64,000 nucleotides of DNA, from NCBI GenBank assembly GCA_904063045.1, contig CAJFCJ010000022.1, positions 620,001 to 684,000 on the forward strand. Direction: 5' to 3'. The position numbers and the translations under genes are program-made. The stretch comes from Dimorphilus gyrociliatus. Lineage: Eukaryota > Animalia > Annelida. Shown here piece by piece: positions 4,737 to 63,520 of this stretch. Under the pieces are notes generated by a model, which was not told the origin of the DNA, did no database searches, and was given only the letters and a program-made list of their open reading frames with translations. The number at the start of each line of letters is the position of its first letter. Position 1 is the first letter of the stretch.

Positions 4737-5453
4737 GGTCTTTCAACGCTTACTGTTTACATATTTCGCTCTGCGTTACTACGGATTAGGATCAATAGAA
4801 TCTTCGACTGTAGCTGGATTAATCTCTCGTAATATCTATTCACTTTATGATTGTTTAATAAATGTTCAGTGCGTTCAACCCACAAGCGCGATGAAGATTT
4901 AAGAATAAAGACTACAAGTGCGAAAAGGTTTATTATTATCAATACAGTATGTATATTAATTTTAGATTAATATCTAATAATTGATAATCTACATAATCTA
5001 GCGGACATTTTATTCTATTCTTTATTCATATTCTTGCTATAGTTTTACCGAGACTGTATGTCTCTGTTTGTCTGTATCTCTTTCTCTCTCTCTCTCTCGC
5101 TGTATAAATTTATACTATATATTATATTCCTTCCTAATAAGAGAGCGCGGCAAACTAGAGAGGAAAGGGGAATCGGCAATCATGATTGGCCTAAGGTCTT
5201 TTCTCTCTCTGAGAACAAACTGGTCTTCGGGAAAAGAGAATAAAAACAGAATATAGAGAGACGCCTTTGGAGTTTATAGGATGAAAAAATTAGAGTAAAC
5301 AACTTTCATTCTAATAATTTTTTAATATTTATCGATCACCTCGAATATTAGGCATTTTCAATACACTTTTCAAAGAACGCCACCTACGGGCCTAACGAAA
5401 CACTCTGGTTCCTATTGAAAGAATGTGAATCTATTTTTTTTGTACACGGAAAT

Positions 5454-9766: not shown

Positions 9767-12147
9767 TCTCTACTAAAGACAGAACAGGTTTGATCACGTC
9801 CAAGGTAAAAAATATATCTATTTATTTATATATGTTCAATAGACGAAACAGTGATTATTGCGATATATAATTAATTTATAATACTATCGAATTGTTTAAA
9901 TATATAATTTCCAGAGAAATCTCTCGTTTTTAACAAGTTAAGAACTAACGTTATTTGAAAATTTGACTATTGGAATAAAGGAACTAAACGAATTTGCTTT
10001 TTGTTTCTTTACCTAATATTATTCCCGCATTTTATAGTGTCCATAAGATTTCTATAAAAAATGATAAAGACTACCGGTAGATGGCGTTATATATAGAGAA
10101 TACATATGGATATATAGTTGTTTGGTACTAGGCGCTATCGATAGGTGGCTGAAAGGTAAAGTGTGTAAAAGGCGTGTAATTGACCAATCGTGCTGTAACA
10201 GTTAACATAAAGTATTAAGAGTTGAAAAAGTATTAATCTTTGAGGCGGAAATTGACACTAAAAACGTGTCTAAAGAGAAAGTTAATCATTTGTTAAAACA
10301 CGGCAAATCGTTAATAAGACGATAGAAAACCTTTTTATTACGTAATTGTAATGTTTATTATTTTATTTACTCCAAAAGATTTTAAAGGCCTAAGGAGCAG
10401 GAATGTTGTTTAGTGAGAAGAGCGAGTGGGTAGGCTAGGCGGAGGAAAAAACGCCTTTTAAAAAGTTACCAAAAGAAATGAAGTGGAAGTTGGAGAGAGA
10501 GAGACAAGTAGACAGTGACAGTGACAGACATACAGAGATAGAGACAGACACACACAGAGAAAGAAAGATATAAACTAAACTACTAGCAGTTATGCAGAGA
10601 CCTTTTAAAAAATATTAAAATCTATTTGTCTTGTGGATGAGAAGGGCATTTGCTAAGAATTCAAAAGGAAGGATAAGAAGGGAGTTCTAAGGAAGAAAAG
10701 TATTAGAGTAACAAGTTGCTTAAATATCGGTAATTCTTTCAGCTGATACTCGAGTGTTGTACGAAGATAGATAGAGTATGCTTTATATATTAAATATTGC
10801 AATTATCTTCAAAGAGTCTGCGGCTAAGTAAAGCAATACGGAATTGCAAATTCAATTCATTTTAAAGTAATCTCATATCATTTTTATTTTATATAGACAA
10901 GACATAAAAACTAATCCATGAAACAAACAATCACCAAAGAGAAACGGTTGGGACGTCAATGATCAAACATAATATTCATCTTATGGAAAAATGATTGCCT
11001 GACAAAGAACATCCTGTTTGTAGCGAGACCGTTTGATTGTTTGTCACCGCTTTCCTTCTGACGCAGCTGAAATCTTCCTATAACCTAATGCAGTTATGTA
11101 ATAGGCGTGAAAGAACGTTTATGCTTAGATATTTCGCACGTTCGGTGTTATGCAACGATAGAAAACAATCGAATTAGGTAATTATTTAATTTCATTGCAG
11201 GCGTTACGCGTCTCTTCATTCAACTAAGAATCGTCTATTATGAGGGAAATAAGGAGGAAGACGGTAATTTCAGGTTGTAACTATCGCTAGGCGACTTACT
11301 TAGGTGTTTTAGGAATGTCGTGTAGAGTTCTCTCTATCTCTCCCTCCGTCTCTTTCTATCCATCTCTCAACACCGTCTTTTTTGTCTCGGATAAAAGATT
11401 TGAAATTGTCACCTGAACAGCTAATTCCTTTGCTATTTTCTCTCTTTCAAATCAGAAAAAAATGACGCCATATTGTGAAATTCGTGCCGGTCTAAAAAAT
11501 ATGGTACAGGTGGGAGAGATGTAACCTTTACCACTGATAAACTAATCGGTAATCAAGGTCAGATTGGTCAAGGATCTATCATTTTTGTTCCCCTGGGTCA
11601 TTTTAAGGTTGTAAGTAGTTATAGAAAGTTTAAACAGCATCTATTAGTGAAATATTGCCTTAAGAAGTATTTTTATTAGACCTAGGTCTTTCTTCTGTAT
11701 TTTGGCGTCAATAAAATTAGCATGAGGTCTAAATATTGCCAATTTCTGTCCGATAGTTTATCTGGGGTGGACTGACCAAGGAGCAAGGGGGGCAATTTCC
11801 ACCTGGGTATTAACCCCCAGGGCTTTTTAACCGGTTCTTTTTTCCGTAATAGGAAAGGAAAAAAAAATCTTTGTGAACTATTTTAACGACGCAATAACTT
11901 TTTATTTCCTTTGCATACAATTAATCCTTAATTACTTTTTTCTTTTTTAGAATAAACCTTATTTTCCCTCTCTCTCTCTCTCTCTCTCTTCTCTTCTCTT
12001 GTTCCCTCTCTTTCCCTCTCACCTCCCACGCTTCTCCCTCTTTTTTCTCTCCTCTATCGTCACCTTCTTTTCTTTCATCCACTCTCTTCTATACATACAC
12101 CATGCACACAAAACAACATGCATACACTGTTTTTATCTTTTGCTGTA

Positions 12148-12262
12148 ATCACGTGACACCATTAAACAACTTTTAGACATCACTCAAAACGCCCGCAACA
12201 AAAAAAACCGAACACATCTAGTCACGTGATGACGTCACAGGTGACGTAACATCGCGCACGTG
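12148..12262. promoter_or_regulatory. Dense E-box/CRE cluster (putative enhancer or promoter)
   Basis: ATCACGTGAC 12148-12157, GTCACGTGAT 12221-12230, TGACGTCA 12230-12237, TGACGTAA 12242-12249, CACGTG 12257-12262. Confidence 0.55.
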
Positions 12263-14429
12263 TTGCTATACTTTGAAGTAGAGAAGAACGAAGAGGATTA
12301 GGCGTTATCGACGCTTCTGTACGAGCGTTACATCATAGCGACGTTTTGTTTTCGGAATGAATTCAGACTGATGACGACGTTCAAAGATTAGATGGACAGT
12401 CACGCCGAGAGAGCGGGCGCAGCTGTATTTAGAATTTATTCCTATTTTTTTTTGTTTTATTATCTTTTTCTCTTCTCTTTTCAATTCTTAATCCTTGGAC
12501 AAACGGAGTAAGGCGAGGGAGGGAGGGAGGGAAGGAGAGAAGAGAGAGAGAGAGAGAGAAAAAAAAAGGGGCTAGCGAAGCAGGTGTTGGGTGGGTAGAT
12601 TTTTATTGAGGATAGCCGCCCTCCTTTTTTATTTTTTATTTATGGAAGAGGCGGCTATTTTAGGCGTATTGACGATGAAAAGAAAAGTCTCTCCTGTAAT
12701 TAAACGGCGAAAAACGTCTACCATAGAATTATTTATTGAGTGCCGAAGCGCAAGTGTCGAACGTGTGAAAATGGCCTTAAAGTCGATAAACTTTTATTTT
12801 TTTATACTCTCTTTTTCTTTCTCTTTTTGGGTCAGACCATTCACCTTGACACTTAATAAATCGTTTTAATCCTCAATTAGACGCTAACACCGTCTGTCAA
12901 AGTGTCTAGATAAAATCCTACTTCAAGTTTTAACAACAAATAAAGCTTTATTTCACCTAATTTATTTTTGAGCCAATTAAGTAAAATTTTGTGTCGAAGA
13001 GAAGAAAATTCAGCTGCGGTACGGAAAGATAAAAAAAAAACAGCACGTGGGGTCTCAAGCCGTAAAAGACAGTGTGCTAAAAAAGAGGCACTTGGTTACG
13101 TAATACTCAAGTGTCGTAATGTGGTGACAAGAAGAAGGTACACCCCAGTCTCGGCCGACCGTTCATCACAGAACATTCATAATTACATTATGCATTTAAT
13201 TAAAAACTCGAGAAAGCTCTCTCCTAGAAGTGATACTTGTAATAATATAAAAGTAACAGATGTATGTTCTTTGATGACGTCATAGACTGGTTAATCTATG
13301 CTAATGTTAACGAAGGAAATTATTATCGATATTATCTTTTTATCGATCGGAAAAGATATTTCACGTTTGGTTTGTTTCGCTAATTGAGGTATCTTTTATT
13401 GGAACAAGTGAATTTTTGATGTTTTCATAAAATCAACATCGAAGGACTTATTTACATAAATTAACGCACGACATAAAACGTTTATGGCTGCTTATAGGGG
13501 TAATATAGCGTCTGTCGCATACCGGCATATTAATACGGGCTTTTCAAAATATTACTTTTCATCTCTTTAGCGTATACGTCATAGAGGCTTGTTATCACTA
13601 TAAATTATCAACAATTTATTTATAATTCCCTCAGCCATATGGTAAAAGGAAAGACGTTTCCCGACTTGTAATTATAACACTTAATTCATTCAACTTTATT
13701 AACCATTTTTTGATTACTATATGCTGGTGATTCTTTCAATCATTCAAGAGTACAATATTCGCTTTAACAATTTCCCTCTCACCTCTCCCTCTCCCTCTCT
13801 CTCTCTCTCCCCCTGGTCCCTCCCTCCCTCAGTGATAATTGAACAGTTATTCAACAATTTTCTTTTATCCTTCTTTATTGATGTTTTATTTTTAATATAT
13901 TGAAATTGAAAATAAACAAAATAAACTAAAAGACGAAATATATTTTAATCCTATATATGTAACTTGATAAAAGACCAGGAAATCGCATGCTGAGATTTCA
14001 CCCCATCGACCACTTCCTAATTTCACTAAGTGCCCCTATTACAGAACACCACCCACCACATATCATACTCTATACGGCAGAGGCGTCTATTACAAAGCCC
14101 CGCCATTTAACGCCGTGAAGCACGTGCCTCTGGAACGTCAGCTCTCGAATAACCGGCTGGAAAAAAAGAGGGTAACCGTCACGAGGGATTTGCGGCAGAT
14201 AGGCGTCTAATTGCCGTCTCTTTTCACTCGTCATGTCACGCGCTAATCGGCGTCGACGCCGTGGCCGCCAGCGTTTTTCGGACGCAAAATAGAGGCGGTG
14301 AAAAAAGGTGATGCTTCTGTGGAAAACTTCAAAAAAAAAAACACTGATGAGATTTTTATAGATAAAATCTAGGAAAATATTGTATGTTAAAGGGAAGGAA
14401 CAAGGTATAATTAGCTTAATTTGTTTTCA

Positions 14430-14635
14430 TTTGATTCTTTCTCTTTTCCTCTTTCATTTTTTCCAATGTCAGATGAAAAGGATGATATATCTTTTTTTCT
14501 TTTCTTTTTCTTTTTCTTTTCCTTCTTCTTCTTCTTCTTTTTCCTTTAGTCTTCTTTCTCCTTCTCCTTCTCCTTCTCCTTCTCCTTCTCCTTCTTCTAA
14601 CTTTTCTCTTTCTCCTTCTTTTCCAACCACTTTGT
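14430..14635. repeat. Polypyrimidine/polypurine low-complexity tract with (CTT)n and (TCTCCT)n
   Basis: Directly visible. It explains the spurious poly-R and poly-SP ORFs. Confidence 0.9.
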
Positions 14636-17600
14636 CCTAGTCCGATTTGCTTCTCTACAAGAGGTCCTCCTAATTCGCCGAGTATTTTATCCCAGTATAC
14701 CACGAAATCTCCTTAGAAAAGTGTAGCATTTCCTTAATCTGGAGATATTAGACGGCGAAAATCAACTGGAATACTTCAAAGTTTCCCGCGAAGAGATATT
14801 ATCTATAAAAAAAAAAGAGAAAAAAAATGACACGATCTTGGATTAATTTAGCGAAAGAATTAATCTGTCCAGGTGTTTTCCGGATGCCGCGATAACGAGA
14901 TTGAACGCTGGCCAACCGGACCGAAACGACTCGATAAACATAAACGCGTGTTGAAGGTCGTATATTTAGCCGTAAAGGGGCTTTGAATGAGAATGAACGG
15001 TAGATGAAGAGGAGTCGACAGGTGTGCACTGAATGACCTGTTTTCTATATGCATTACGTACATCAAAAAAGGTTTTTGTATCGGAAAATGTGCATACAGT
15101 AAATCAAACACATAGTCAATTCCCTTTTAGATTTATTACAAGCAAAAATCCCGCCCAATTTTTCATATTCTAAATGCAAACAAACTTAAAGACGCCTCCC
15201 TTTCATACAAAGTAAACAACGAAGCGCTAAGTATGAGGGTGCTTATACATACAGCAGAGGGAAAGATTTAGAGAGGAAATTGCGTCAAAGCATTTCTTAA
15301 CTAGCCATATGTTGACCGTATAAATCTTTCATTAAATTTACCCCTTTCCCTTTTTATCCTCAACTCATTTTGCTTTATTTTACTGATTTATAGCCTTAAA
15401 TTTTTATTAAGTAAGTTTTACCATAAGAATCTGTTTTCTTTTTATCCCAATATCCTTTTCTTCTTCGTTGTCGTCGTCTTTTCTCCTTTTTCTCATTCTT
15501 TCCGTTTCTTTGGCTTTTTTCTCTCTCTCTCTCTTTCTCCCTTTACGTTTGTTTCGAGTGCACTACAAAACTTAACACTTAACCCGATAATTGAAAGACA
15601 TGGGGGAAATGCTTTGATTTCTTATTAGGATTTTTTCCCATGTGCCTTGGAAGATAAGGAAGAAAAGCAAGGCGAACATGAAAAAAAACAAATAACCTCT
15701 TCAAAATTTTTTTCTTAATTATCTATCCAGATAAAGATGGGAAAAAAGTTTTCCTCTTACGCTCGTCTACCCGAATTAAGCAGCTTAAAGTAGCTTGTCA
15801 CTTCCGCTTTACCATTTTTTCTCACCTTTTTTCCAAAGATTTTTGAGGTTGAGTTAACTTCGGATAACTCTGAACGAGGATAAACGCGATATGCCGTAAA
15901 ATCGGTCAAATATCCGAACATAAAGACAATGTGTTACAATATTTATTCGTTTTTTTGATTCCTGGCAGGGGCTCTGCCATTCCCTTTTAATGTTACAATC
16001 CCATGGAATTCCTCGCTGTTGGACAATGGTCAACGTATAAATATATTATAAATACTAATTAAAGGACGGTATTTAACCGTCTAAATAGAGAATGTTCATC
16101 CGGTGGAAACGCGTGTGCGAAATAATCAGCGATTATTACGTGTATTATCCCAAATTCAAGTGATATACGATACTACTATTTACCTTCGATCTTTCGCGCC
16201 TTTACGAGTTTTTTAAGTAGTTTTCACTTATCTTCTCTCTTGTTTTCCTTTTAAAAGAGAATCATTGATAATCTCTTATCCGACAAAATAAATTGCTGCA
16301 GTAAAAAAAGTGACCTTGTCCTAATGAAGCGTGTGACATTATACGTCTTGAAATGTCAAGTAAAAAATGCACACATAAAGTATTACTGCACGTGCGTTCG
16401 AACATCTCCCTGTGTAATCCATATTTCAACGTTCTAATCAACTTATCATGTTCCATTTTTAAAAGTAACAAATCTATAAAAAGTTCTTAATTTAAGGGAA
16501 ATCTTGCGAATGGATGCCTTTTTTCCCTCTCTTTAATAAAGAATTCAAGTAATAAAAATACCTTTATATGTAAGAAAAGTTTGTTTGAAGGTGAAAAATG
16601 ATACGATTAAATTGAACACTTTAATTAATGGAAAAAGCAGGGATCGCTTTCAGAAGACAAATTTGTCTTCCTTTTTCACCTTTGTCAATGAACAATTAAG
16701 AGTACATAGAACTCGATTCAATGCATTAGAAGCGTTGAATGAATAGAATGTCAAATTGACCGGTCACGCAGTTATTCGAGAGTTGCATGACGCTCTCCAG
16801 GCACGTGCCAGACGGAGTTAAATGGCAACAATGAAATAAAAGCTTGTTAATCATTTGTCATTTTTTCGTAAGTTTGTTTAAAAAAAATTTCTCTTAACCA
16901 CTCTCATTTTCCTACAAATTAATTAGGCAAACAAGCGACGAAAGAGAAAAAAGAGACGCCGAAAGAAAGGTATAAACTTAGAAGGGAAGAGAAGGATGTG
17001 GGAACGGGGGAAGAGAAAGACTTGTATTTGTTCTTTTCCTCCTTTTTTATCCCTACTTATCAGGGATGCGTTTCTCAGCATGCAGGTACTTAACCTCGTT
17101 CCCCAAAGGAAAAACAATAGCCCTACTTGCCCTATTGGCTCTTTTCTTGCTATTTAGCAGGGTATAAGAGGTAGAGTCAACAATTAAATGCAACCTGCAT
17201 TACACCGAATATGTACAAAGTATTAAGAATAAGAGTAGAAGGGTACTTCTATCAGTCCTTAATCAGATACATGGGTTTCTCGTGTAACTTTTTTGGGCAA
17301 ACAACTTAAAAACCTGTATATTTTCAAAACAAATAACACGTTTTATTCGTACCAGGTCCATTTTGCATAGTGTTTACTGTCTCTCTCCAACTTTTCTTTT
17401 TTCTTTGTCATGTGACGTTAGTTTCTATCGGATTATGTCAAAAGTGTTGAAATACAGCTCGATGTACTGTTGATATATGTTTAAATAATTGCGGGGCTCC
17501 CATTTCGAACGTAACATCTATAAAAGTTGGAATTACCACTAATTTTTCTCTCTTTGAACTATGTGAATGATATGTAAATATCAAAGAGGATAAAGACAAT

Positions 17601-17907
17601 TTCCCATTTTAGACAAAATTACGCAATCAAACGTTTACTCTTTTTCCTCTTTCAATCACATAAAAAAAATAAGTAAATTTATTTCTTTGACACTTTTGCG
17701 CTTGTTACATTCAAGATTATTATCGTAAAACTCAAGCATCACTTCAGCATTGCAAAGAGGCTTTCCTGTTGAAAATTGACAGGTTTCGTCTTCATAAAAA
17801 GTTTAAGTTTATCCTTCCGTTTTCCGTTCTAAACATAAATAAGTGTCGTATCTCTCATCTTCTCTCCTCCTCCTTTCTCTTCTCTGCCTCCGTGTTGCCC
17901 ATCCCCT

Positions 17908-17938
<31 letters not shown>

Positions 17939-18610
17939 TTACGGAAGCATCTTGATAATGAGCACTTTTTAAGAGCCATTTCCGACTTAAGAGACTTTGT
18001 TGATTACTCGAACGATAACTTTATTTCTGTAATACATTTCACATTCAAAACTATCTAAAGTCTATTATGTAATTTTTTTATTGTCTATAGCAATTTAACA
18101 GGTCTATTAAACTCTCACAGAAAGGAGAACGCCGCGAAAAACTCGCCCAAAGCTATATCGAACGATCTATAAAACTGTTACGTAAGGCATTTCAGCATGA
18201 GCAGCTGAAAGCAATGGTGTCTAGACATAGAAAACTATACAGACACGTCTATTTAACGCAATAGAGCGTTGCTAAACACCTGGGTTCAGCGATAGCTCCG
18301 CCCAACAGTGAAATTTCCGAGAAAGTCGGTGATTGGATAATAATCCAACGAATCAAATACGAGCTCGAGTTGACAAAGCGGAAAAGTGGTGTTGTCTGGA
18401 GTTTTAGAGACTAGTTGATGTTTTTACCGTGTCAAGGGCCGTTCCGTTAAGGATGATGTTGAATTTCAGGGACTCTCCCGATCTTATAACCGAGGATTCT
18501 ATACAATACGAAAGGTTTGTTGTCAAAATTTATAACATTATTGGTAGGAAAGAAAAGCCATTTTTATAAGAAAGTGTACAACTTACGTGTGTGTAAAAAT
18601 TTTAGTATAT

Positions 18611-18615
<5 letters not shown>

Positions 18616-18663
<48 letters not shown>
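18616..18663. repeat. (TA)n microsatellite
   Basis: About 24 uninterrupted TA units. Confidence 0.95.
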
Positions 18664-18671
<8 letters not shown>

Positions 18672-21600
18672 TAGGCATATTAAGGTAGACTTAACAAGTT
18701 TGGCTGTATTCAAAACACGAACAACCATATCAAATAGCTTATTTTTATTTAATTGCTAAATCTGATAGCGGAAAGTTGAATAGCAATAAATTTATTGGAT
18801 TGCCAAAGTATAACGGTAGGAAGGCCCGTAAGCAATTAACATGCACTGCTATTACTCTCTTGAGTAATTCGGGGTTATATAATCATAACTATTGGTTTCT
18901 ACGCCTTCGGCAATGGCCTACAGTGATGGCAATTACCCTTTTCAATGGCAGTAACAATCTTGTGAAAAAGAAACGGTCAGCTAGAAGATAAAATATTTGT
19001 CTTGTGTGTAATTGCCATAGTTTACGAGCTCTATAATTATTCTCATGAATATTTGATCAATCTGTATAGTATTTTCATATATTAATATTAAAGTAAATTT
19101 CGGTGAATGTTAGGAATGGTAAATTAGTAGTTGAGAAAAAAACTAGGTGGGGAAGCTTCCCCCCTTCCGTTTGATTGTCGTGCAAACTCGTAAATCTATA
19201 AAAGAGTACGAGAGGGAGGGCGGTAAGAGAAAGAGAGGAGAAGAAATAGCTATAGTCGCAACATTATCAAAGAGAGAGAGAGAGAGAGAGAGGACAAGAA
19301 AAGAATAAATTTAATAGTATAATTATATATATAATTAAGTCGTCTAAACGTTAAACATGATCTAAAAGTAATATATTTCTTTTATGTGCGAAATTTAAGA
19401 AAGACCATTTGTGATATTATATGTTAAGCGCCATTAGAATGTGATTTAAAGCCAATATATTCTCACGTAACTACATAAAAACGTCAAGACTTGTAAATAT
19501 TAACAATCCTAATTACTATTGATAAGCTTGGTGTTTTTATTTTTTTTCCCTCCATCTCCCACTTGTATTATTTATTTAAACATCTGAGGTTGTTTGTCAC
19601 GCTCCTATATCGTTTTACTAACATAAACTTAGCCCTCAAATATTTTGATCGGGCAGATAACTTATGCGTCTAGGAGAATTTCTTGCGCCGTTTAAATATG
19701 CGATGGATTGAATGTACACCCTTCGTTTACAAATTGTTTACATATTTCTCCTATATCCAATACCCTACTCGATTTTCGCTCATTAAACAACAGAATTTTC
19801 TATTAGCCTCATATTTTATTAATTATTCGTACAAGTACGCTAAAGTGCTGTATATAATGTTTTGTGGCGCCTATCCTCCTCTTAGATATTATTATGCGCA
19901 TGTTTCACGCTACTAATCGATCATCACCCTTTGAAGAGGCAAAAAAATTTCAGCCTCATTAATTTTCGGTCATGCTGGTCTGATCACCCGCATTCTCTTT
20001 TCAATATGAGCAAAGTTAACGAAAGAGAGAAAAAGTTAAATGACCAGGGGCCCTTTAAAAATCAATCAGTCTAATTATCTTTCATAAATAAATCTTGCCC
20101 CTACTTAAAGAAACCAACCAATCATAATCTTTGGTTTCATTGATTTCTCTTTTCCGGCCCGCTCTCGCCTTATATTTTTAAACGTTTATGGAATGTTCGC
20201 CTTGTCGTCATTCATTAACTTAAAACATACAAAATATGCGGCCCCGACTAATGACGCTCGAAAATGTTTGTTGCTTTTTCCCTTTGATTTACGACTCGTG
20301 TTGAATATATCAACAACATTTTTACTGTTAGCTTCATCATCTATAACTCGCTTATAATGACTTTTAACAATTGTCAAATAGCTTTGATAAACACTGTCCG
20401 GGAGGGAGGGGGAGGAGGAGGAGTAGAGAGGAGTAGATAAAGAAGGAAGAAAATGTTCATTTATCAAGTAATTTAACCCGCTAATAAAAAAAGACCCCGC
20501 TAATAATTACAGAATAGAGTTTGACAATAATCGTCTAGTTCTAAAGGGAATTTTCAAGCATTAATCCTCTAAAATTATTGCTATACATTTCAAGTGTCAA
20601 CGGGCGTCTAGAGCGTTATTAGTCATTTATTATATTACGGAAAAAATTATCATAATAACAAAGAATAGTAAGGGCCCGAATAAAGAAAGGAGAAGACAAG
20701 AAACGCTAGAAGTGATAGGAAAAGAAGAATAAAAAGAGAGGAATGCGTGTTAAAGAAAGAAAAAAAACGAGAAAAAAAAGGGGGAACCTTCTGTTATCGG
20801 ATACTTTGATAAAAAGTGATATAGTCTTTCTCGCAACTGTTGTTTGCAACTTATCGCTTGGTTACAACTGTTTATGGAAAAGAGTGAAAAGAGCGAAAAG
20901 CCCCTTTAAATTGTCATTTAATACTTTTTGTACAAGTGTAATGGCGAGTGAAAAACTATCGTTGAAAGTTTATTTTCAATTTTCCGGTTTAAGTTTTCCA
21001 CTATGTGTCAAGTTTGTCATAGCCGACGAGGTTTTGTCGTTAAAAAAACAGGTAAGACATTTAGAGTTTGTTTTTTGAAATAACACGATAAACGCGTGCC
21101 CCGTCCGTCGACGCTGGCGTCTATTATAGCTGTCAGATGTTAATAATGAAAAAGTCAGGTGAAAAGGGGCGTTAGTTGAATTTTTAAAGAAATTGAATAT
21201 CAAGTTGTTCATACTAAATGTAATATTTGTTCGTTGTTTAAATGTTGTCTAAAATGTATGCGACACTTTACGGCCGATTAGACGCGAACAGTAAACAATT
21301 GTGAAAAATATAAGAAGATATAAAACAGACACGCACTGTCGGATATCTAGTTACGACATATCACATGTTATCACCTAATTTATTAACTATTCTCCCTATT
21401 ATATCAGTTACTAGTAGTAGTCGTTCCTAACGTGTTTTCATTACAGTCTGCCAAACTGTTAAGTAAGCCTATAAATTTTGAAATAATTGACGAAAAGGTT
21501 ATACGGTTAAAGGTAATTTAATAATAATGAATTTTTCAGCATTGAATGCAAAATTGGTAGAAGATTAGCCAAAATTGGTGACGCGCTTGACGAAAAGTAC

Positions 21601-52000: not shown

Positions 52001-52604
52001 ATGGAAAAGGAGAAGACCTTTGGTAGAGTGGTTAGAACAATACAGGTAATAAAATACTCTAGAATTCTATCCTATTGTTTTCGTTTTATCCTTAATCATC
52101 TTCGTATTCACTACTACCAGTACTATCTTTAAGATCACTTTATAACTGGATAATTTTACCGTATTTTGCACTTAAAAAATATGAGCTGAAGCGCCATCTC
52201 TAGTTTGGAGGTGGAGGATAGGAGGGAGATGGAGTCTAGTAAGGGAGATAGGGAGTGACTGGAAGCGTTTGGCTTAAACTTTTTTTTTCTTTCTTCACTT
52301 TATGTTTGTTTTAGAAAGAGTAGTTTTAGAAAAAGTCTTTTGATAAGAAAGGATAATTGTAAGGTGAAGAGTTACCCGGCTATTTAAAAATAAATGATGC
52401 TATAAAAACAATATTATGATTGAAATAATTTTCAACACCAAGAAAACTTGAGTATTTCTTACTAATTTTCGGATTATAGTTTTAAATTTCAAAGAAACTA
52501 TGATAGGCAGGAATAAAAGTAGATAAAATATTTTCATCTGTCCAGAAAGGAACGGGATTAATAAGGACTAGCTTTAAGAAAGAGATGAAGGAAGAAAGTG
52601 AGAA

Positions 52605-52636
<32 letters not shown>

Positions 52637-55600
52637 GGACAGAGAGAGAATGAAAACGTAAAAGTTTGAAATAATAAGAAAACTTAAAATTATAAATGTA
52701 TGAATCTATTTGCATTTGTCTGTGTTATTTTTATATAAGTTATATAAGAGTTTTAGCATATTGATTAAATTATAACGTCATCACCAGAAGCTGTGCATGT
52801 GACATTCCGTAACTAAAGCATCCGACACACACAGACACAAACACACACATGCGTTTATATATTAATTGTTTTATTTATTTTTAATATATGCAAAAGGTAG
52901 ATATTGTTGATAATTCAGTTATTTAACTCTCGTTACCAAGACGACTAATAGCTAGCCAACACTCTCTTTATACATGCATTATACATGGTAATGAAGCTAT
53001 ATGGCTCTATATATGTACACGGCATGTCAGAGCTAGTCTTTCATGACGTCTAGCGCCACCGAGCACCTGCTATTTCGTAACCATGGAAACTCTCATTTCG
53101 CACTGTCTTCTCGGCTTTTCTATCGACCTGCTTTCCATACACCTTGACAAACATGTTATGATAAATTAGGGAGGAGTAGCCTTTAAACCAGTGTATTTTT
53201 TTTGATAACTTGGCCACCAATTACAAAGTCAAAGGATAAAGAGAAAAAATATACTTAAATGTCTTCCGTTTTTCGGAAAATTCAGGTTTGTTTTTTAGTG
53301 TATCTTTAGTAAAACAAGGAAAGAAAAAAGCCAAAATCTTCGCTTCTCTTTTTCCTATTCAATCGAAGATGAGTGTATACTTTCTAATGAGCATATTCCA
53401 TTTTCTCTTCGTTGCTTGTTGTTTAACTTTTTTCAATGTAAGATGTTTATAAATATAGTTGATATATTTTATTTATTATTTGGTTTATAATCTCAATCTC
53501 TTCTTGACTTTTTCTTCCCTCTCCATCCGCCTCTCCATCTCCCATTCCTCTATCATAGCCTATGATTTCATTATCCCATTAAATTGTTAACTTTTATATC
53601 TTCTATATCAAACAAAAGTTGAAATGAGGAGTGAGAGAGAGAGAGAGAGAGAGAGTCCGTGAGAATGAGAGATAAAGAGAAGAAATAAAGACAAGTAGGG
53701 AAATAGGAGGAGTATATTGAAAAAAAATTGTGTTGACTGTTTGATTTCGATAAGAACTCGGTTGTTCGCTTCTTATTACAACTAGGAAAAAGGTGAAACC
53801 TTATTAAAACCTATTCGAATTAATTCTTTACCTTCTTTTTCTCTTCTTTCTCCATTTTCCCCAGCTGCTCATTTCTCCATTTCCTCGAAAGAGTCAAATT
53901 AGATGAATGGTAGGATAAAATAATCTACAATTCGCCGTCCTGAATAGTTGATTTATGTAGTATTAATATACTTTCACTTGTATTTCTCTCTTTTTGCTCA
54001 TCTTTTAGTTTGTTAATTATGATCTATTCTTTGTCTATGTAGTTGCATAGAGCGAAAAAACCTAATTATGATAATCCCTTTGAAGAATAATAAACAAGTC
54101 TTCGATTTGTTTGAAAAGTAATTAGCCTTCGATCTAAAAATACTAATCAAATGATCTAGTTTAATTTAGCGATTGATAAACTCTTTTAAAGAGATTAGAA
54201 GATAGTTATGAATGAATGAATGAATGAATGAACGAAACAGAATGAAAAAGAAGAGAGGAAAGAAAGATTTAAAAATTCTATGTTTTTAAAATATGATTTA
54301 AGAGTAATTATTTTATCTCCAACCTCTTCTCTTTTTTCCTAATAGCTCATTAGATCATGGGCTTCGAACCGACTACAATCGGGAGAGGTCGTTCAACAGG
54401 ATTCTTTCCTGGAAAGATTTGCTATGGGTGGAGCCGTCGCTACGGAAAGTGGGTCGGAGGCTGGTGGCGGGGGGTCAGGCAAGAAAAAACCTGGCATATT
54501 TAGTTTAAGGTAAGATAAAAGAAAGTAAAAACCAAAAAGACAAACAAGTACTTGATGAAAAAATCAAAAAGATGTATAAACAAGTACGATGATTGACTTA
54601 AATGTCGATCATAGGTTGTTTTTTTTATACATAACTGTACAATTTATATTTAGACGCTTAGTCATCTTTTTTGTCAAAGTCGTTTTATAAAGAGACTCTC
54701 TTTTGAAATGAAACTATACGAAAAAGTACTAACTGAGTAACAAATGAAAGACCGACATCTAAAGCTCGGCTACCGATTGCAAAAGGTTGATCAACTAATA
54801 CATTAAGACAATAACCTGTCCTTGAACTTGATTTGATAATTATTTAAGGGGATTGTATGGAATTATCAATCAATATTTCATAACGGTTAACACGGTTAAT
54901 AAACATACATACTTGAAAATGTTTTACACTCGTACGTCGTATTTTTGTGTCTATATAATGCAATGACTTGTGAATAATCAGACGCTAATTAATTAGCGTA
55001 TGTAAAGCTTCTCTATAATGATATTAGGGAAAATATATATTTATAAGAGTCCAATATATTCTGGTACCTTAATTATTTTACGTAGAGGGTCACCAAGTAT
55101 TTTTCTTATATCCTTCTACAATCCTATATTTCATCTTTATAATTACTATTACTTTTCATTCTCTTTAGTTTTGTTTACTTATTTATTAAGTTGGCCATCT
55201 ATCTAACTGTACATCATTAAGAAAAGTTGTTTTGTTTACACTTCCTTTTTCCTCTAGTATAATGACTTGGAGTTTAACATTTTCAATTAGCATATGAAAA
55301 AAAGCAATAACGCCTCTAATAGCCAATATACAGTATATTATTATAATAAATACTTCCATAAAAAACGACTGACTCGGTTGCGATCCTTCTCCTTATTATT
55401 AGTATTGATTTAATTGCTTCCATTCACGCGTCCATCCTTCCTTACGTACATCCGCGCGTATATACAGTATATATATATATATATATATATATTCTCTATA
55501 TATATTTTCCCTAATAGCTGTTTAATAGAGAATCGATTTGTTTTCTTCCTTTTTTCTTCCCTTTTTCTATTCTGTTTTGTTTTTTTATATATCGATATGC

Positions 55601-56061
55601 TACAAGTTATTTTTTAGTCTTTTTTCTATTCTTTCCCTTTTCTTTCTTTCTTTCTTTCTTTCTTTCTCTTTTTTCTCTCTTCGTCAATTTTTTCTTTACA
55701 ATCAAATATTAATGTCACCTATCCTAATCAGGTACTGGAAATGTTGGGTAATGGATCCTTCTTCAACGGCCTATTATCGTTGGTTGGCCGTCATTTCAAT
55801 TGCCGTCCTCTACAATCTCATCATGATCGTCGCCCGTTCAGTCTTTTGGAAACTACAACAGCAATTTAGATACATCTGGCTGGGTTTAGACTATATCTGT
55901 GATACGATTTATCTTATCGATATGTTCGTACAATTTCGAACTGGTAAGTTAGCATTTAACTTTTTTCTACATTTCTCTTTTGTTTGAATTCCACTTTTTG
56001 AAATGAATTTCAATAATTTCGAAACTCTTCTCTCTTTCCTCTTTCTTCTACTTCTTCCTCT

Positions 56062-56108
<47 letters not shown>

Positions 56109-56580
56109 CTTCTTTTTAAAGCTATTTCTATGTTCTTCTTTGATCTATTGCATATTCACACAATTAAACCATATATTGTTTTGCTTTATTAGTCTCTTTT
56201 CTTTTCTTTTTTGCATATTCTGTATATACATATTTTTTTTTTCATTTCATATGTGCGCATGCGCAATGGCGTCAGTTTTGTGGTCTATTGCACATAATAG
56301 GCATAGTTAATTGATAGAAATTAGCGCAGCGACAATTTACTCTCTTTTTTTTCAGGGTTATCAAACAGTCTTTACGCTATTTAGCACTTAATGACATTGA
56401 TTATTTATTTATTTAGATAATAGAATCAATTCTCTCCATCTTTTTTCTCTTTAGTTCTTTCTCATTTCCTTTTTTTTCTTTTGTTTATAGACTGCTTGTT
56501 TAATTTAAATAATAACAATACAAGGAGGATATAGAAAAGAAAATGGAAATTTCAATACTTTTTATTTGCCTGTCTGTCTG

Positions 56581-56611
<31 letters not shown>

Positions 56612-58445
56612 TTAAGAGTAAATATGAATAAAATAACAATCTAGGCACAGAAAAAATATGTTTCTTTATTAATTAAGAAACAGAAAGAGAAAGAAAGTGA
56701 CATCATCTTGTACATATGATATAAATGATAAAGAAATAAGCTATAGTACTCGATTGAATTAGTGCAAAATGCGTAAAAATCGAATGTTAAGGACGAGAAA
56801 GAATTAAAAGAAAACAAAAGTTTGACAAACAGTGTTTTCTCTACCTATATTTTTTAAGTTACATAGATTATACAGTAAAAATTCTCTATTGCAGTTTGAT
56901 GTAATCTATATATGTTTCTGAGTACCGATCTTCGTTGTAAACAAGTAAAACCACCACCAACCCCAATTTGATGAGTACAACCCTCCAATGTTGGCTATTT
57001 AGTTAATAAAACTTTGTTTTTAAAGGTATAATTTTAAAATAGGTTACTTGGAACATGGCCTGCTGGTTGACGACAACCGCAAACTGGCTAAGCGCTATGC
57101 GAAAACTTTGCAGTTCAAAATTGATATCTTTTCCATTCTACCGACCGATCTCCTATATTTGGCAATAAAAGACTTAGACGCTGCCTACTTACGTTTTAAT
57201 AGGATTTTCAAGTTTTACAGACTAGTTGATTTTTTCGATAGAACAGAAACGAGGACAAACTATCCAAATGTTTTTCGAATATCTAAGCTTATTCTATATA
57301 TTCTTATCATCATTCACTGGAATTCATGCATCTATTTCCAAATATCAGCTTTGATAGGCTTCGGCACGGACGACTGGGTTTATTATAATATTAATGAAAC
57401 TCTTTACCCCGAGAATGCCACGCTTAGCCGAATGTATATCTATTCTTTCTATTGGTCGACGCTCACACTCACAACTATAGGAGAGACGCCACGTCCAGAG
57501 AAGGATGTCGAATACGTTTTTGTCGTCTTCGACTTCCTTATCGGCGTTTTAATATTTGCTACAATCGTAGGTGACGTCGGCAGCATGATTTCGAATATGA
57601 ACGCTGCAAAATCAGATTTTCAACAAAGAATGGACGGCGTTAAAATGTACATGAAACTAAGGAAGGTAGGGGAAGATCTAGAGACTAGAGTTATCAAGTG
57701 GTTCGATTACGTTTGGAATAATAAAGAGTCTTTTGACGAAGAGGAGATTCTATCTAAACTACCAGAGAAATTACGAGCAGAAATAGCTATAAACGTTCAT
57801 TTAGACGCTCTGAAAAGAGTAGCAATCTTCCAAGATTGCGAGCCAGGCCTTTTAGTTCAATTGGTATTAAAATTAAAATTATCCATCTTCAGTCCAGGCG
57901 ATTACGTTTGCAGAAAAGGTGATATTGGTAAAGAGATGTATATAGTTAAGAAAGGTCAATTAAACGTAGTAGGCGACGACGGACAAACAATTTACGCCGG
58001 CCTAGGAGACGGATCGGTTTTTGGAGAAGTTTCCATTCTAAATATTCCTGGCAACAAAACGGGAAATCGACGGACGGCTAACGTCAGGAGTCTAGGATAT
58101 TCCGATTTGTTCGTCCTCTCCAAAGACGATCTGTGGGACGCTTTACAAGAGTATCCCGACGCCAAGGACAAGTTAATCGAAAGAGGTAAAGATATCCTGC
58201 AAAAGGACGAGCTGTACGATCCCGAAGCGGCTAAATTAGAAGAAGTAGCTAAGGAGTCTTTAGATCACAGGTTAGAGAGGATAGACGTCAATCTTGACGG
58301 TTTAACAACGCGTTTCGCGAGATTACTCGCCGAGTTCTCTTCTCAACAATCAAAAACAAAGCAAAGATTGAGTAAAATGGAAAAGGAGCTGGACGATATG
58401 AGAAAATCAGTTGTTCCAAGCGACGAGCATCTCAGTTTGAAATAG
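52001..58445 (+). CDS. CNGA: CNGA-type cyclic nucleotide-gated channel, isoform A (52001-52045, 54346-54509, 55732-55943, 57043-58445)
   Basis: FGRVVRTIQ|LIRSWA...DSFLERF...|[10 protein letters not shown] (S1-S2)...FRTG|YLEHG. Pore [26 protein letters not shown]-terminal coiled coil. All phases are consistent. Confidence 0.9.
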
Positions 58446-59236
58446 CGTGCATAAAAGTAACAAACAGACAAATGAGAACAAAATCACTTTTTATTATCCA
58501 TATTTAATTAACTAATTAATTAATTAATAAGTTTAATTAGTTAATTAGAAACAAAACGAAAGAAGGAAGTTACAAAGTTAACTTGTATATTTATTTATTT
58601 ATCAATTTTCTAAGTTTTTTAGTTTGTATTTAACTTAAATCATTTACTTTACATACTGTATTTATATGAAAAACTCCAGAAGAACAATACTTTATGGCAT
58701 CCATGTTAGTGCCTCTATTCAAACAATCTTGTACAACAGCGTTCAAAGTTGTAACTATACGTTTACTTATATAATATTATATAAAAGAGTATATTGTAGA
58801 TAAATTTCTCTGTTTATCTTTCTCCCTTCTCCTCTTCCCCACTCCCTCCTAATCCTAAGAAAAGCCAATGGTATATATATATATATATATATACCTTATA
58901 TATGAATATCGTAAAAAAAATAGAGAAATATTATCACTAAATTCGAAAAATGGTATGAAATTTTCTCGAAAGAAGAGAATACTTGAATTAAAGAGATTAT
59001 ACAACGAAATGAACAAACGTTTTAAATGTGTGCGCATATGCTATAAATAGTTCTAGTTTATCAATCTTTATATTTTGCGCAGTTTTGCGGTGTTTCTCTT
59101 TCATTTTTACTCTTTAAAACTCTCATTTTCGTGCATTAAAATCACCTGAGATCTATCTATTAGCCTCTTAAGTGAAGTCTGCGCTGAGCGTATTAAATTT
59201 GAACGCTTTGACATTTTTTACCGCAAAATTTTCCAG

Positions 59237-60878
59237 TTTATTTGGAACAAGGTCTTCAAGTTCGAGACTCGAAAAAACTCGCAAAAAAATATATATCGGC
59301 CTTAAGGTTCAAGTTTGACGTCATATCTCTTCTACCGACCGATATTCTCTATGTATTCCTTGGTATCAATTTCCCTGAAATTCGCGCCAATAGACTTCTG
59401 CGTTTATCGAGGATGCTGGAATTTTTCGACAGAACAGAAACTAGAACAAATTATCCCAATACTTTTAGAATAACTAACCTTATTCTTTACACCCTCATCA
59501 TTATCCACTGGAATGCTTGCTTCTTCTTTCAAGTGTCGGCTTGGATTGGTTTCGGATCCGACGACTGGGTTTACTTCAGTATCAACGAAACACTCTACCC
59601 CGACAACGCCAGTCTCAGCCGAATGTATATCTACTCATTCTACTGGTCGACTCTCACGTTAACAACGATTGGAGAAACGCCCCGACCGGAGCGGGACGTC
59701 GAATACGTCTTTGTAGTTTTAGAGTTTCTAATCGGCGTTCTAATCTTTGCTACAATCGTCGGTAACGTCGGTAGCATGATTTCGAATATGAACGCCTCAA
59801 AAGCGGAATTTCAGCAGAGAATGGACGGAGTTAAACAATATATGGAGTTTCGACGGGTTAGCAAAGACCTGGAAAGCAGAGTAATAAAATGGTTTGATTA
59901 TCTATGGACGGAGAAACAGTCCGTAGACGAACAGCAAATTCTTGCCGCTCTTCCAGAAAAACTCAGAGCTGAAATAGCTATGCACGTCCACTTGGATACG
60001 CTTAAGAGGGTTGCAATATTTCAAGATTGCGAACCCGGATTACTCGTCGAACTCGTTCTCAAATTGAAACTATCCGTCTTTAGTCCTGGTGACTACATTT
60101 GCAGAAAAGGGGATATTGGGAAGGAAATGTATATCGTTAAAAGAGGCAAGTTAAGCGTTGTTGGTGACGACGGAAAAACTGTATTTGTAACGCTTAGCGA
60201 CGGATCAGTCTTCGGAGAAATATCAATTCTAAATATTGCCGGCAATAAAACTGGCAATAGAAGAACAGCCAATGTTAGATCTATAGGCTATTCAGATTTA
60301 TTTGTCTTATCTAAAGACGATCTATGGGATGCCTTAACCGAATATCCCGAAGGGAAAAAGGTTCTAATGGAGAGGGGAAAGCAAATCCTCATGAAAGTAA
60401 GCTATTGTTCATTGTTCACGTTCTTTCTCTTCCTCCTATCTTGATTTGTTTCTATAAATTCATATTTCTCCAAGGATAATCTTATTGACGAAGAGGCTGC
60501 TAGAAAGGCTGAACAAGAGCAGGAATCAGTCGATCTCAAGGTTGATAGAATTCTAACGGATCTTGATAATTTACAAGTAAGCTACTTCCTTTCCCCTTTC
60601 CCTGATCTTCTAATGCGTTTGTTTGTTTATTCCTTATTATCTTTTCAACAAAACAGACCCGATTCGCTCGTCTTATGGCCGAATTCCAATCGACTCAGTC
60701 GAAACTCAAACAACGAGTAACAAAATTAGAAAAGAAACACGAAAATGATGGCCAATCAAACTTGAGTACTTTATTAAGGGATGTTGATAATGCGATGGCT
60801 GACGATTTAAAAGATAGCCAACCGAGAACGTCGAGATCAAAGTCCGTTTCGCTAAACATCGAAAATCAAAGGAATTAG
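59237..60878 (+). CDS. CNGA: Second CNGA S3-to-C-terminus block, isoform B (59237-60396, 60475-60576, 60657-60878); no N-terminal exons of its own
   Basis: Phase-1 acceptor ttccag|TT TAT TTG GAA CAA GGT is homologous to the 57043 acceptor. Intact pore and CNBD. In-frame stop just upstream, and no S1-S2 sequence in 58446-59236. Confidence 0.88.
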
Positions 60879-61204
60879 AAATGTTGAGAATTTCTTCCGT
60901 TAAAGCTCAAACATCCTTAGTTCTATTCTTTATATATACATATTTATATAGAGTATATTCTTATTAATGACAGAGGAGGAACAAAATGCTTACAATGAAA
61001 TTAAGAAAAACAAAGAATTATTCTTTATTTCGAACATTTTTTCTGAACGAAATCAATGATAAACAACTTAAAATATAATCATTCTATTTCATTAACATAT
61101 ACAATAGTGTATATATTCAATGAATATACTAAAAGTATATACGATTACTTATAGCTTGTCACTACCTCCATATCTACTACTTTACAGTATACACCTTAGC
61201 TCTC

Positions 61205-63520
61205 TCAGTAAGGGCGAATTGAACACCTATAGCCGCATTTTAACAGATTGGATAATTGTAACATTATCAATTCACTCTCTTCATCATAGGCCTTGTTGCA
61301 ATCTTCCGAGTCGTCGTTATTTGAATGAATATATAATTCTCTTCCATAGACTCTAGTCCAGTCTACTTTAAATGAAAGGGGATTAAACCCCACCCACTCT
61401 GTGTATCTATACTTTGCGGTTCTTACGCTATAACCCATTATCCTAATATACCTTAACTTTGGCTGATCGCTATCAAATCTCGGATAAATGGACGGACGAG
61501 GGTATTGACTGAAAGCGGCAATTTTATTCATTGTCTGCCTCTTCAACAAGCTTAATCCTTCCGTGCAGACTTTTTCAAAGTGACCTTCACGACAGCGCCT
61601 TAACGGCTCAAGGCCAACCACGTCAACAAGCGTTGGAAAAACGTCAACTAGTTCGACGAGTTCGTTTGAAACTCTTTTAGGAGTGTACGTCAATCGATTG
61701 GGTGTTTTGAGGGCATCGACGAAATTGAACTTGAACGAACCTTCACTAGGAAGATGAAGGAGAAGAGGAACTCTAGTAGAAACTTCGAAGTTGCTGAATT
61801 TTGACCACTCTCCGTGCTCTCCCAGAGACCATCCTTCGGAAGAAAACTATTATATTTACAATCGCAACTCATCGTAATAAGATAAAGGTTGAAGGAAGAG
61901 AGGTGACAAGAGGGAAAATAGACAATTACCATGATCGCTCATAAAAAGAATAACAGTATTTTCAGCAAATCCATTCTCTGTAAGAGCGGAGAGAACCCGA
62001 CCCACTTGACTATCCATGTAGGACGTAGAAGCAAAATAGCTTTGTCTAATTTTTTGCTGTTGAAAAATGTTATAATAAAAATAAAGGATTTCCCAAAGAT
62101 GAGTATCGTGACAATAAAGCCTTTTTTAATTTATATATCGTAATGAAAGAAAGGGGGAGGAGAGTATTGCGGTTGTAGGAGAGAAGAATAGGAGAGAAAA
62201 GAAAAAAAGAATAGATTGATCGACAATCTGTTCGTAGTCAAAATGATATGACCTAGTTAGGATAAAAGTCTTCATCTATCATCACCGCCAGTATTTCTAT
62301 GACTGCAATAGAGTTAAAGAATGATTGCAAATCATTTTTTACCCTGTAATTTAAAGGTATCTCTTCGAAAGGAAATGTTAAATTTAACTGCTGTATATCG
62401 TCTCTTAATCTTAGATCGTTCCACGGATTCCACGCCGGTAGGGGTAATTTCTCGGGTTTGGTTGCATCCTTTAACTTTGGGATTCGGTAGAATGGATATA
62501 AATCTTTATAGAGTAGAATTATCAATCGTAACTATTTCTATAATATGCTATTAGAATATAATTACCAAGATACTCCTTTGGAAATTTTAATGGAATGTGC
62601 GGTTTATGGAATCCTACAGCCATAAAAAATGGCTTTTCCTTTTTATAATTATTTAAAAACCTAACAGAGTAATCGGCAATTTCAATGTCAGGTAGAGATT
62701 TTCCAGGTTGACTTTCCACGTCAACTGGGCATACGATATTCATCCGTTTCCCCCATTTCGTCGGGCAAACCTTTGACATTCTATACTTTAAAGTCGGCGG
62801 ATGATAAGGTTTTTCCGACCAGCTATAAGGGCAATCGTCTGAATGGTTGCTAACAATTCCTACAAGAAAAGGAAGAGAAAGTCTATTATATAATAATTTC
62901 GATAATAATACTGATAATAATAGTAATAGTAATAGTAGCAGTAAGTAGGATAAAATTACCGCATTTTCAAGGTAGAAAGAGAGTAATAATATACCTGGAT
63001 GGAAAATCTTGCCAATTGACAAAGTGTGATAGCCTTTTTCTTTGAAATACTGAGGTAAAGTGGTAAAATTACCGGCAGCTCTTCTCCAATACGAATGAAC
63101 ATCATAGAGTTTGATGGAATCCGGTCTTCTTCCCGTTAGAAAGGATGTTCTGCTCGGTCCACAAAGGGCTTGCTACAAAGAGTTTAATTGAACGTGATGT
63201 TGTGCAGGAATTGGGATACGAAAACGGACAAACTTGAGCATAAGTTCTATTGTATAATGTTGATTGTGACGCTAATTGGTCAATATTAGGCGTGTTCATA
63301 TATGATGTATTAAAGGCCCCCAAAGCTGGTCTCAGATCATCTATAATGATCATAAGAACATTTTCTCGAGGATTCCCCCATCCTAATGAAATAAACGACG
63401 CAGGGTAAAATAGTAATGACGGCGTCTGATAAATATTACACTATATGAAATTATACCTGAGACTATAAGTACAAGTAACTGATAGAGGGTGAATATCCAC
63501 CCTTTTTCCAGTTTTTTCAT
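61205..63520 (-). CDS. IDS: Iduronate 2-sulfatase
   Basis: Signal-peptide exon [21 protein letters not shown] (from 63520) joins [19 protein letters not shown]. Active site [18 protein letters not shown]; GKIFHPG; [12 protein letters not shown]; [12 protein letters not shown]; FSQYPRP; MGYSVRT. Confidence 0.95.

Follow-up and report, generated by a model that had tools for sequence, protein, structure and literature searches.

Diversity among cyclic-nucleotide-gated (CNG) channels is thought to arise from separate alpha and beta genes. A locus in the annelid Dimorphilus gyrociliatus raises the question of whether two alpha-type subunits can be produced by a single gene. In a 64,000-nucleotide stretch of contig CAJFCJ010000022.1 (assembly GCA_904063045.1, positions 620,001 to 684,000 of the forward strand; this whole stretch is termed the window, and positions without a prefix are counted within it), one exon encoding transmembrane segments S1 and S2 is followed by two downstream blocks, here called A and B, each of which encodes S3 to S6, the pore, the C-linker, a cyclic-nucleotide-binding domain (CNBD) and a coiled coil. 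A previous interpretation, made from the letters of the window (the sequence-only reading), had proposed that a splice and polyadenylation switch selects between the two blocks, or mixes them. The analysis presented here points to a gene of CNGA type with alternative last exons, where a single 5' part is probably spliced either to A or to B. The interpretation of a shared front end with two alternative blocks is supported, with genomic and phylogenetic support that is solid, and transcript support that is good, if not final.

One front end and two terminal blocks

The shared S1-S2 exon (55732-55943, + strand) encodes a sequence ending in ...DMFVQFRT, and its 3' end reads FRT followed by G|gtaagt, leaving the reading frame in phase 1. 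Block A (57043-58445, +) is one exon of 467 codons in a single open reading frame (ORF) that extends from S3 to the coiled coil and ends in a stop codon at 58443-58445. It is preceded by an AG at 57041-57042, and position 57043 completes a glycine codon (G|GT TAC TTG, giving GYLE...). Block B is divided among three exons on the same strand, of which the first (59237-60396) encodes S3 to S6, the pore, the C-linker and the CNBD, the second (60475-60576) the linker that follows the CNBD and the start of the coiled coil, and the third (60657-60878) the end of the coiled coil, the C-terminal tail and a stop codon at 60876-60878. Here an AG at 59235-59236 precedes the block, and the split codon (G|TT TAT TTG) gives VYLE.... 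The two introns inside block B (60397-60474 and 60577-60656) have borders that were set from spliced contigs. Both blocks thus possess their own stop codon, and they are separated by a spacer of 791 bp (58446-59236). The donor at 55943, the phase-1 acceptors at 57043 and 59237 and the stops at 58445 and 60878 are all as the sequence-only reading had placed them.

The division of the channel domain between these exons is evident from profile matches. The shared exon covers positions 3-56 of the Pfam Ion_trans profile (PF00520), and A and B each cover positions 60-239, at 84 and 85 bits respectively; therefore, neither block encodes a complete channel without the shared exon, and the domain is whole only after splicing, as each block lacks positions 1-59. 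Both blocks also match the cNMP_binding profile (PF00027; 65 bits for A, 63 bits for B) and carry the GNRRTANV phosphate-binding cassette (PBC) in the CNBD. The CLZ profile (PF16526) is matched by A at 64.5 bits, and exon 3 of block B covers positions 45-71 of this profile at 36.6 bits. The pore signature T-I-G-E-T-P, including the pore glutamate, is present in both blocks, and the filter region is identical. The best named matches are CNGA3-like proteins, at 65-73% identity, and a phylogenetic tree places A and B among spiralian CNGA proteins. Judged by its domains, pore signature and position in the tree, the gene is a CNGA-type CNG channel subunit.

There is no second S1-S2-like sequence in the spacer or in the remainder of the 64-kb window in tblastn searches with four S1-S2 queries at E values up to 10, and full-length CNGA queries also find a single S1-S2 exon in the window. 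The earlier claim that the spacer holds no S1-S2 sequence is thus upheld, as is the claim that it holds no in-frame AUG, since no in-frame methionine codon is found upstream before the one that begins MLEFFDRTE.

Upstream of the S1-S2 exon, the front end includes at least one further exon. This shared N-terminal exon (54346-54509, +) encodes LIRSWAS...KKKPGIFSL plus an AG, is followed by a gtaaga donor at 54510, and contains a motif that is conserved in the CNGA proteins of Owenia, Lingula, Physella, Tubulanus and Lamellibrachia. Contigs from two sequencing runs, described below, link its 3' end (...AACCTGGCATATTTAGTTTA) to 55732, and the letters upstream of 55732 in these contigs are unique in the window, occurring at 54488-54504, which defines the exon. 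A candidate first coding exon (52001-52045, +), ending in | gtaatt, is suggested by homology; its motif matches the N-termini of CNGA proteins from Tubulanus, Owenia and Physella, where it lies just upstream of the motif of the next exon. There may be additional 5' exons. With 52001-52045 as the start of the coding sequence, products of ~607 amino acids for A and ~634 amino acids for B would be predicted.

The published annotation of D. gyrociliatus depicts the locus differently, as two adjacent genes that both start at internal methionine codons and are truncated. A 531-amino-acid model corresponds to 55751-58445, running from a methionine inside the S1-S2 exon through block A, and a 435-amino-acid model, DgyrCDS12995, corresponds to 59413-60878, that is, block B from an internal methionine and without S1-S3. 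From that methionine onwards block B is 100% identical to DgyrCDS12995, including the C-terminus encoded by exon 3. The exon at 54346-54509 is found in neither model. At the DNA level, the final 14,588 bases of the window agree with contig CAJFCJ010000022.1 at 100%.

Transcripts across the locus and the role of the spacer

Two sequencing runs were aligned to 55450-61400, one from the same species (X2) and one a marine metatranscriptome (X1). Of the ten X2 contigs, nine agree with the window to 99% or better, and the X2 contig over the S1-S2 exon has a depth of 220. In X2 the donor at 55943 is joined to 57043 at a k-mer depth of 53.9 and to 59237 at a depth of 63.3, in both cases with GT..AG borders. 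The junctions that the sequence-only reading had proposed looking for are thus both present in assembled contigs, and the splice-choice part of its proposed switch holds, in that one donor is used with two acceptors. Block B is also transcribed and processed. The X2 joints 60396>60475 and 60576>60657, both at a depth of 195, correspond to removal of both B introns, and the first of these joints recurs in X1 at a depth of 6.9, where fragments matching the S1-S2 exon, A and B at 95-99% are found. No joint from A to B is among the four joints listed for the X2 and X1 contigs over the aligned region. The shorter side of the two junction contigs is 27 and 29 nucleotides, as would be expected if they are unitigs of 31-letter words (30 minus ambiguous bases), in which case words derived from reads cross the junctions and a mis-join is not the source.

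Together these findings suggest the following arrangement. One upstream promoter would transcribe the shared 5' part, consisting of at least the exons at 54346-54509 and 55732-55943. Joining of the donor at 55943 to the proximal acceptor at 57043 would yield isoform A, ending at the stop at 58445, whereas joining to the distal acceptor at 59237 would skip block A and, with removal of the two short introns, yield isoform B, ending at 60878. The two outcomes would necessarily exclude each other, as the reading frame closes in either block. The spacer would then have two roles, as the 3' untranslated region (UTR) and presumed polyadenylation region of A, and as the final stretch of the intron that is spliced out to make B. 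The choice between A and B may also be regulated by cell type.

Several observations about the transcripts weigh against this arrangement. X2 carries no record of its library type, and the run is taken as cDNA-derived because its contigs are spliced. The evidence consists of assembled contigs rather than single molecules, and no full-length isoform from cap to poly(A) is among them. Unspliced or read-through RNA is abundant, as the intron and spacer are covered at depths of 23-77, and one X2 contig continues unspliced past the 55943 donor at a depth of 29.5. Two further features, a contig that runs unbroken from A into B and another that begins just before B, each bear on a separate alternative.

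The first alternative is that the splice choice is real but is not accompanied by a polyadenylation switch, such that all transcripts reach a poly(A) site after B. The mRNA for A would then carry, behind the S1-S2 exon and block A, an extended 3' UTR made up of the spacer and block B, and might be a target of nonsense-mediated decay. This would account for the X2 contig that is unbroken over 57042-59265 at a mean depth of 135, similar to that of A, and for the spacer itself, in which there is no AATAAA signal and the only variants are ATTAAA at 58987, 59135 and 59192. However, contig depths are means over whole contigs, so a drop in depth after A would be invisible, and the pre-mRNA of isoform B covers the spacer in any case. 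In a close relative, moreover, an AATAAA lies ~45 nucleotides past the stop of A. The spacers at two other annelid loci (L003 and L005, described below) exceed 5 kb, and that of L005 contains a reverse-transcriptase insertion, a construction that is unlikely for a UTR. On balance, obligate read-through is unlikely, and a poly(A) site of A may lie in the spacer.

The second alternative is implied by the two-gene annotation, in which B is the separate gene DgyrCDS12995. Here B would be expressed mainly from a promoter of its own in the spacer, with the junction from S1-S2 to B a minor by-product. Consistent with this, an X1 contig begins 26 nucleotides upstream of the B acceptor, which makes an extra internal start for B possible; the depth over the B contig (195) exceeds that over the junction (63); and GC-rich motifs together with TATAAATA are found at 59031-59052. 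Yet RNA that started in the spacer would meet no in-frame AUG before MLEFFDRTE, and the resulting protein, missing everything from S1 to mid-S4, would be unable to form a channel. In every species the phase-1 acceptor has been conserved, and the junction from S1-S2 to B equals that of A in depth. Moreover, the long retention of B at a ratio of nonsynonymous to synonymous substitution rates (dN/dS) of 0.02, with no S1-S2 of its own, makes sense only with a shared exon. An autonomous B promoter as the main source is accordingly regarded as improbable, and splicing from a common front end is retained as the preferred explanation for both blocks.

Apart from these alternatives, the non-coding sequences of the locus have features of their own. 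The A acceptor has an A-rich upstream tract, and ~26 nucleotides before it are conserved with the close relative, whereas the B acceptor has a better pyrimidine tract and ~57 conserved nucleotides before it (compared with locus L001 of the same relative). These ~57 nucleotides hold a small GC hairpin (TGCGCTGAGCGTA). GC-rich motifs (TGCGCA and GCGCAGT..TGCGGT) stand out in the AT-rich spacer at 59031-59100 and 59180-59236, and in the relative at L001:3913-3935 and 4146-4205. The motifs and the hairpin are possible control elements for splicing or polyadenylation. A search for docking and selector pairing between the first intron and the spacer found only shared TGCGCA/AGCGCAG motifs of 6-7 nucleotides.

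Within the intron between S1-S2 and A, an element of ~150 nucleotides (56250-56400, +) is 76% identical to L002:911-1093 of the close relative, in an intron that is otherwise unalignable and at a coding synonymous divergence (dS) of ~1.6. It contains a perfect TGCGCATGCGCA palindrome, which we take to resemble an NRF1 site, several TAAT cores and a predicted hairpin with a z score of -2.3. The element may act as an enhancer, as a regulator of splicing or as a small RNA; no Rfam match is found in 54000-61500, the element included, at E <= 1. In the same intron, X2 contigs diverge from the window at 56248 and rejoin it at 56666, neither of which is a splice site, with 191 and 255 unmatched letters. 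This is probably a second haplotype or an intron indel.

Conservation and divergence of the two blocks

The same order of S1-S2, A and B is found in other annelids, in agreement with the suggestion that synteny in related species would be informative. In the close relative (L001/L002), A has 92% protein identity and 83% identity in coding DNA. In an ENA assembly represented by L003/L004, the S1-S2 exon is at 4848-5063, A at 10014-11458 and B, with introns, at 16959-20714, and in L005, also from an ENA assembly, the corresponding positions are ~4187-4396, 10001-11431 and 16763-18615. A reverse-transcriptase ORF (RVT_1) is inserted in the A-B spacer of the last of these (L005:12428-13315), and the spacer therefore tolerates large insertions. 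In Capitella teleta (L007), the S1-S2 exon (9989-10210) is followed by A (11328-12727) and an intact B of 562 codons (13208-14896), with a spacer of ~480 bp. The Capitella CNG model CAPTEDRAFT_146497 ends at A, and no gene is called over B in the locus table that was returned.

Six loci, that of D. gyrociliatus among them, have one S1-S2 exon each, and relaxed tblastn searches at E values up to 10 find no S1-S2-like sequence in the A-B spacers of L001, L003, L004, L005 and L007. A separate S1-S2 exon for B is thus found neither here nor in the five other loci. In Lingula and Owenia (L006 and L009) there is one block behind the same phase-1 acceptor, and this acceptor precedes the (G/V)YLEQG codon in all copies, whether A, B or the single blocks of Lingula and Owenia.

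Not every lineage has kept both blocks. In Lamellibrachia satsuma (L008), A is intact and B persists as a remnant (15429-18452) whose sequence starts only past the pore filter, with S3 through the filter missing and substitutions in S6; it is annotated as a gene of 182 amino acids. This is a decayed copy, and looks like a lineage-specific loss of the B isoform.

The Lamellibrachia example, and the fact that partial tandem duplicates are common, raise the question of whether B (or A) is a non-functional partial duplicate in D. gyrociliatus too, or an artefact of an assembly that lost a second 5' half. At the protein level A and B are 75% identical over 387 amino acids, and synonymous sites are saturated, with a proportion of synonymous differences (pS) of 0.79. 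Against either possibility, both ORFs are intact, and comparison with the close relative (L001) yields dN/dS values of 0.025 (A) and 0.021 (B), with dS ~1.6. Both blocks are therefore under strong purifying selection, and the sequence-only reading was correct to infer selection on both from many synonymous differences and intact frames. Both blocks are also kept in Dimorphilus, its relative, Capitella and two other lineages, both are spliced into RNA, and the layout is identical in independent assemblies, which disposes of an assembly error that collapsed a second 5' half. A defunct duplicate or an assembly artefact is hence extremely unlikely.

In a maximum-likelihood tree, the A copies form a clade of 17 rows with support of 100/100 and the B copies a clade of 10 rows with support of 95/86. 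Each clade holds copies from Dimorphilus, its relative, L003, L005 and Capitella, and thus the duplication predates the split of these lineages; Owenia, Lingula and molluscs fall outside both clades. Only four positions split all A from all B copies (block positions 57, 206, 273 and 289, with K, L, Q and V in A versus R, F, E and I in B). At all four, B has the outgroup state, and the stem branch of A is longer than that of B (0.16 versus 0.042), which marks A as derived and B as conservative. The arrangement probably originated by tandem duplication of a large last exon, its acceptor included, early in annelids and after Owenia had branched off, following which B kept the ancestral sequence states and A diverged.

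How much the two subunits differ in function is a further point on which the evidence is less favourable to a switch between distinct channels. In addition to the filter, the PBC threonine that contacts cGMP is identical in A and B, as is an aspartate that was aligned by hand to D604 of bovine CNGA1 and that we take to be its equivalent, so functional divergence appears modest. To speak of two pore modules, as the sequence-only reading did, overstates the difference. By our reading, one of the four type-specific positions falls in S4, one in the C-linker and two in the CNBD. Any functional difference is more likely to concern gating, ligand sensitivity, assembly (both the CLZ and the tails differ between A and B) or trafficking than ion selectivity, and it is in gating or assembly that the A and B subunits may have different properties.

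Two other features of the window are recorded here. A convergent sulfatase gene (61205-63353, -; Pfam Sulfatase in the annotation) ends ~330 nucleotides from the CNG stop, and X2 contig 12 spans the 3' ends of both genes. A weak tblastn match at 3216-3458 (-), with 28% identity to part of the CNBD of Lingula CNGA, may belong to another gene with a cyclic-nucleotide-binding domain.

Platynereis CNGA genes and comparison with known systems

Tosches et al. 2014 (PMC4182423) treat CNGA-alpha and CNGA-beta of Platynereis dumerilii as separate genes that are both expressed across the extended ciliary-photoreceptor region, and report neither common 5' exons nor a tandem arrangement. In the tree, CNGA-alpha (P0028) belongs to the B clade, and its cDNA joins a 7-residue S2 tail (MFVQFRT) to a B-type block, providing one independent hint of an S2-to-B junction. 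The forward primer for CNGA-beta (PMC4182423) reads ...TTGCAG and then GGTACTTGGAGCAA, which resembles an acceptor followed by the start of a block. This is a hint, not proof, that the CNGA-beta clone began in an unspliced intron, and CNGA-beta may be of A type and share a locus with CNGA-alpha. No named full-length B-type annelid protein was returned by a search with Platynereis CNGA-alpha, and when the S1-S2 region of Lamellibrachia served as query, no further annelid protein came back. Such a layout goes unmentioned in a survey of CNG genes across metazoans (Lagman et al. 2022, PMC9803222), and literature searches found no description of a shared 5' half with two alternative last blocks for a CNG channel, in keeping with the sequence-only reading, which knew of none.

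A broader possibility is that the locus represents an annelid-wide device for making two subunits from one gene. Under this scenario, Platynereis CNGA-alpha and CNGA-beta would be isoforms of one transcription unit, and the relative use of the two acceptors by a single donor (~1:1 in whole animals here) would determine the composition of A/B heteromers or switch the channel type between sensory cell types, with the element at 56250-56400 perhaps part of the switch. We put this forward tentatively, as a conjecture that is considerably less likely to hold than to fail.

With two alpha-type subunits on one promoter and one S1-S2 exon, their relative abundance would be set by RNA processing. Several annelid lineages have retained the layout, probably over hundreds of millions of years, and counts of annelid CNGA paralogues need to be re-read in light of it. 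The same applies to the Platynereis CNGA-alpha and CNGA-beta expression data, as both are markers in the debate on the evolution of ciliary photoreceptors. The locus is also a natural experiment in which S1-S2 is constant and everything from S3 to the C-terminus is swapped.

The CNGA proteins of other metazoans (vertebrate CNGA1-3, Drosophila CNGA, and the CNGA3-like proteins of Lingula, Owenia and molluscs) share with A and B the S1-S6 segments, the TIGETP filter, the C-linker, a CNBD with GNRRTA, and the CLZ. In Lingula and Owenia, the part from S3 to the C-terminus is likewise encoded by one large last exon, preceded by the same phase-1 intron as here. The difference is that in those species there is one last exon per gene, with paralogues as separate genes, whereas the annelid gene carries two tandem copies of its last exon and one 5' half serves both.

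The class of mechanism (alternative last exons, tandem exon duplication) is well known; for a CNG channel, and on a scale of ~80% of the protein, we found no precedent. In Drosophila PGRP-LC, pipe, lola and mod(mdg4), one promoter and common N-terminal exons serve tandem 3' modules that are chosen exclusively. These genes belong to other protein families, have several to many variants, and in the case of mod(mdg4) are trans-spliced; none encodes an ion channel. Drosophila Shaker, a gene of the voltage-gated-like superfamily, exchanges S6 and the C-terminus through alternative 3' exons behind a common core. In contrast to Shaker, where only S6 and the tail are exchanged, ~80% of the protein is exchanged here (S3 through the CNBD and coiled coil), and each alternative is a complete copy of the ancestral last exon. 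Tandem exon duplication in the same phase has also produced mutually exclusive internal exons, for instance in para, cacophony, RDL and nicotinic acetylcholine receptor (nAChR) subunits. Those are small internal cassettes between constant exons, whereas the alternatives of the annelid CNGA gene are terminal, each with its own stop codon and, presumably, its own 3' UTR.

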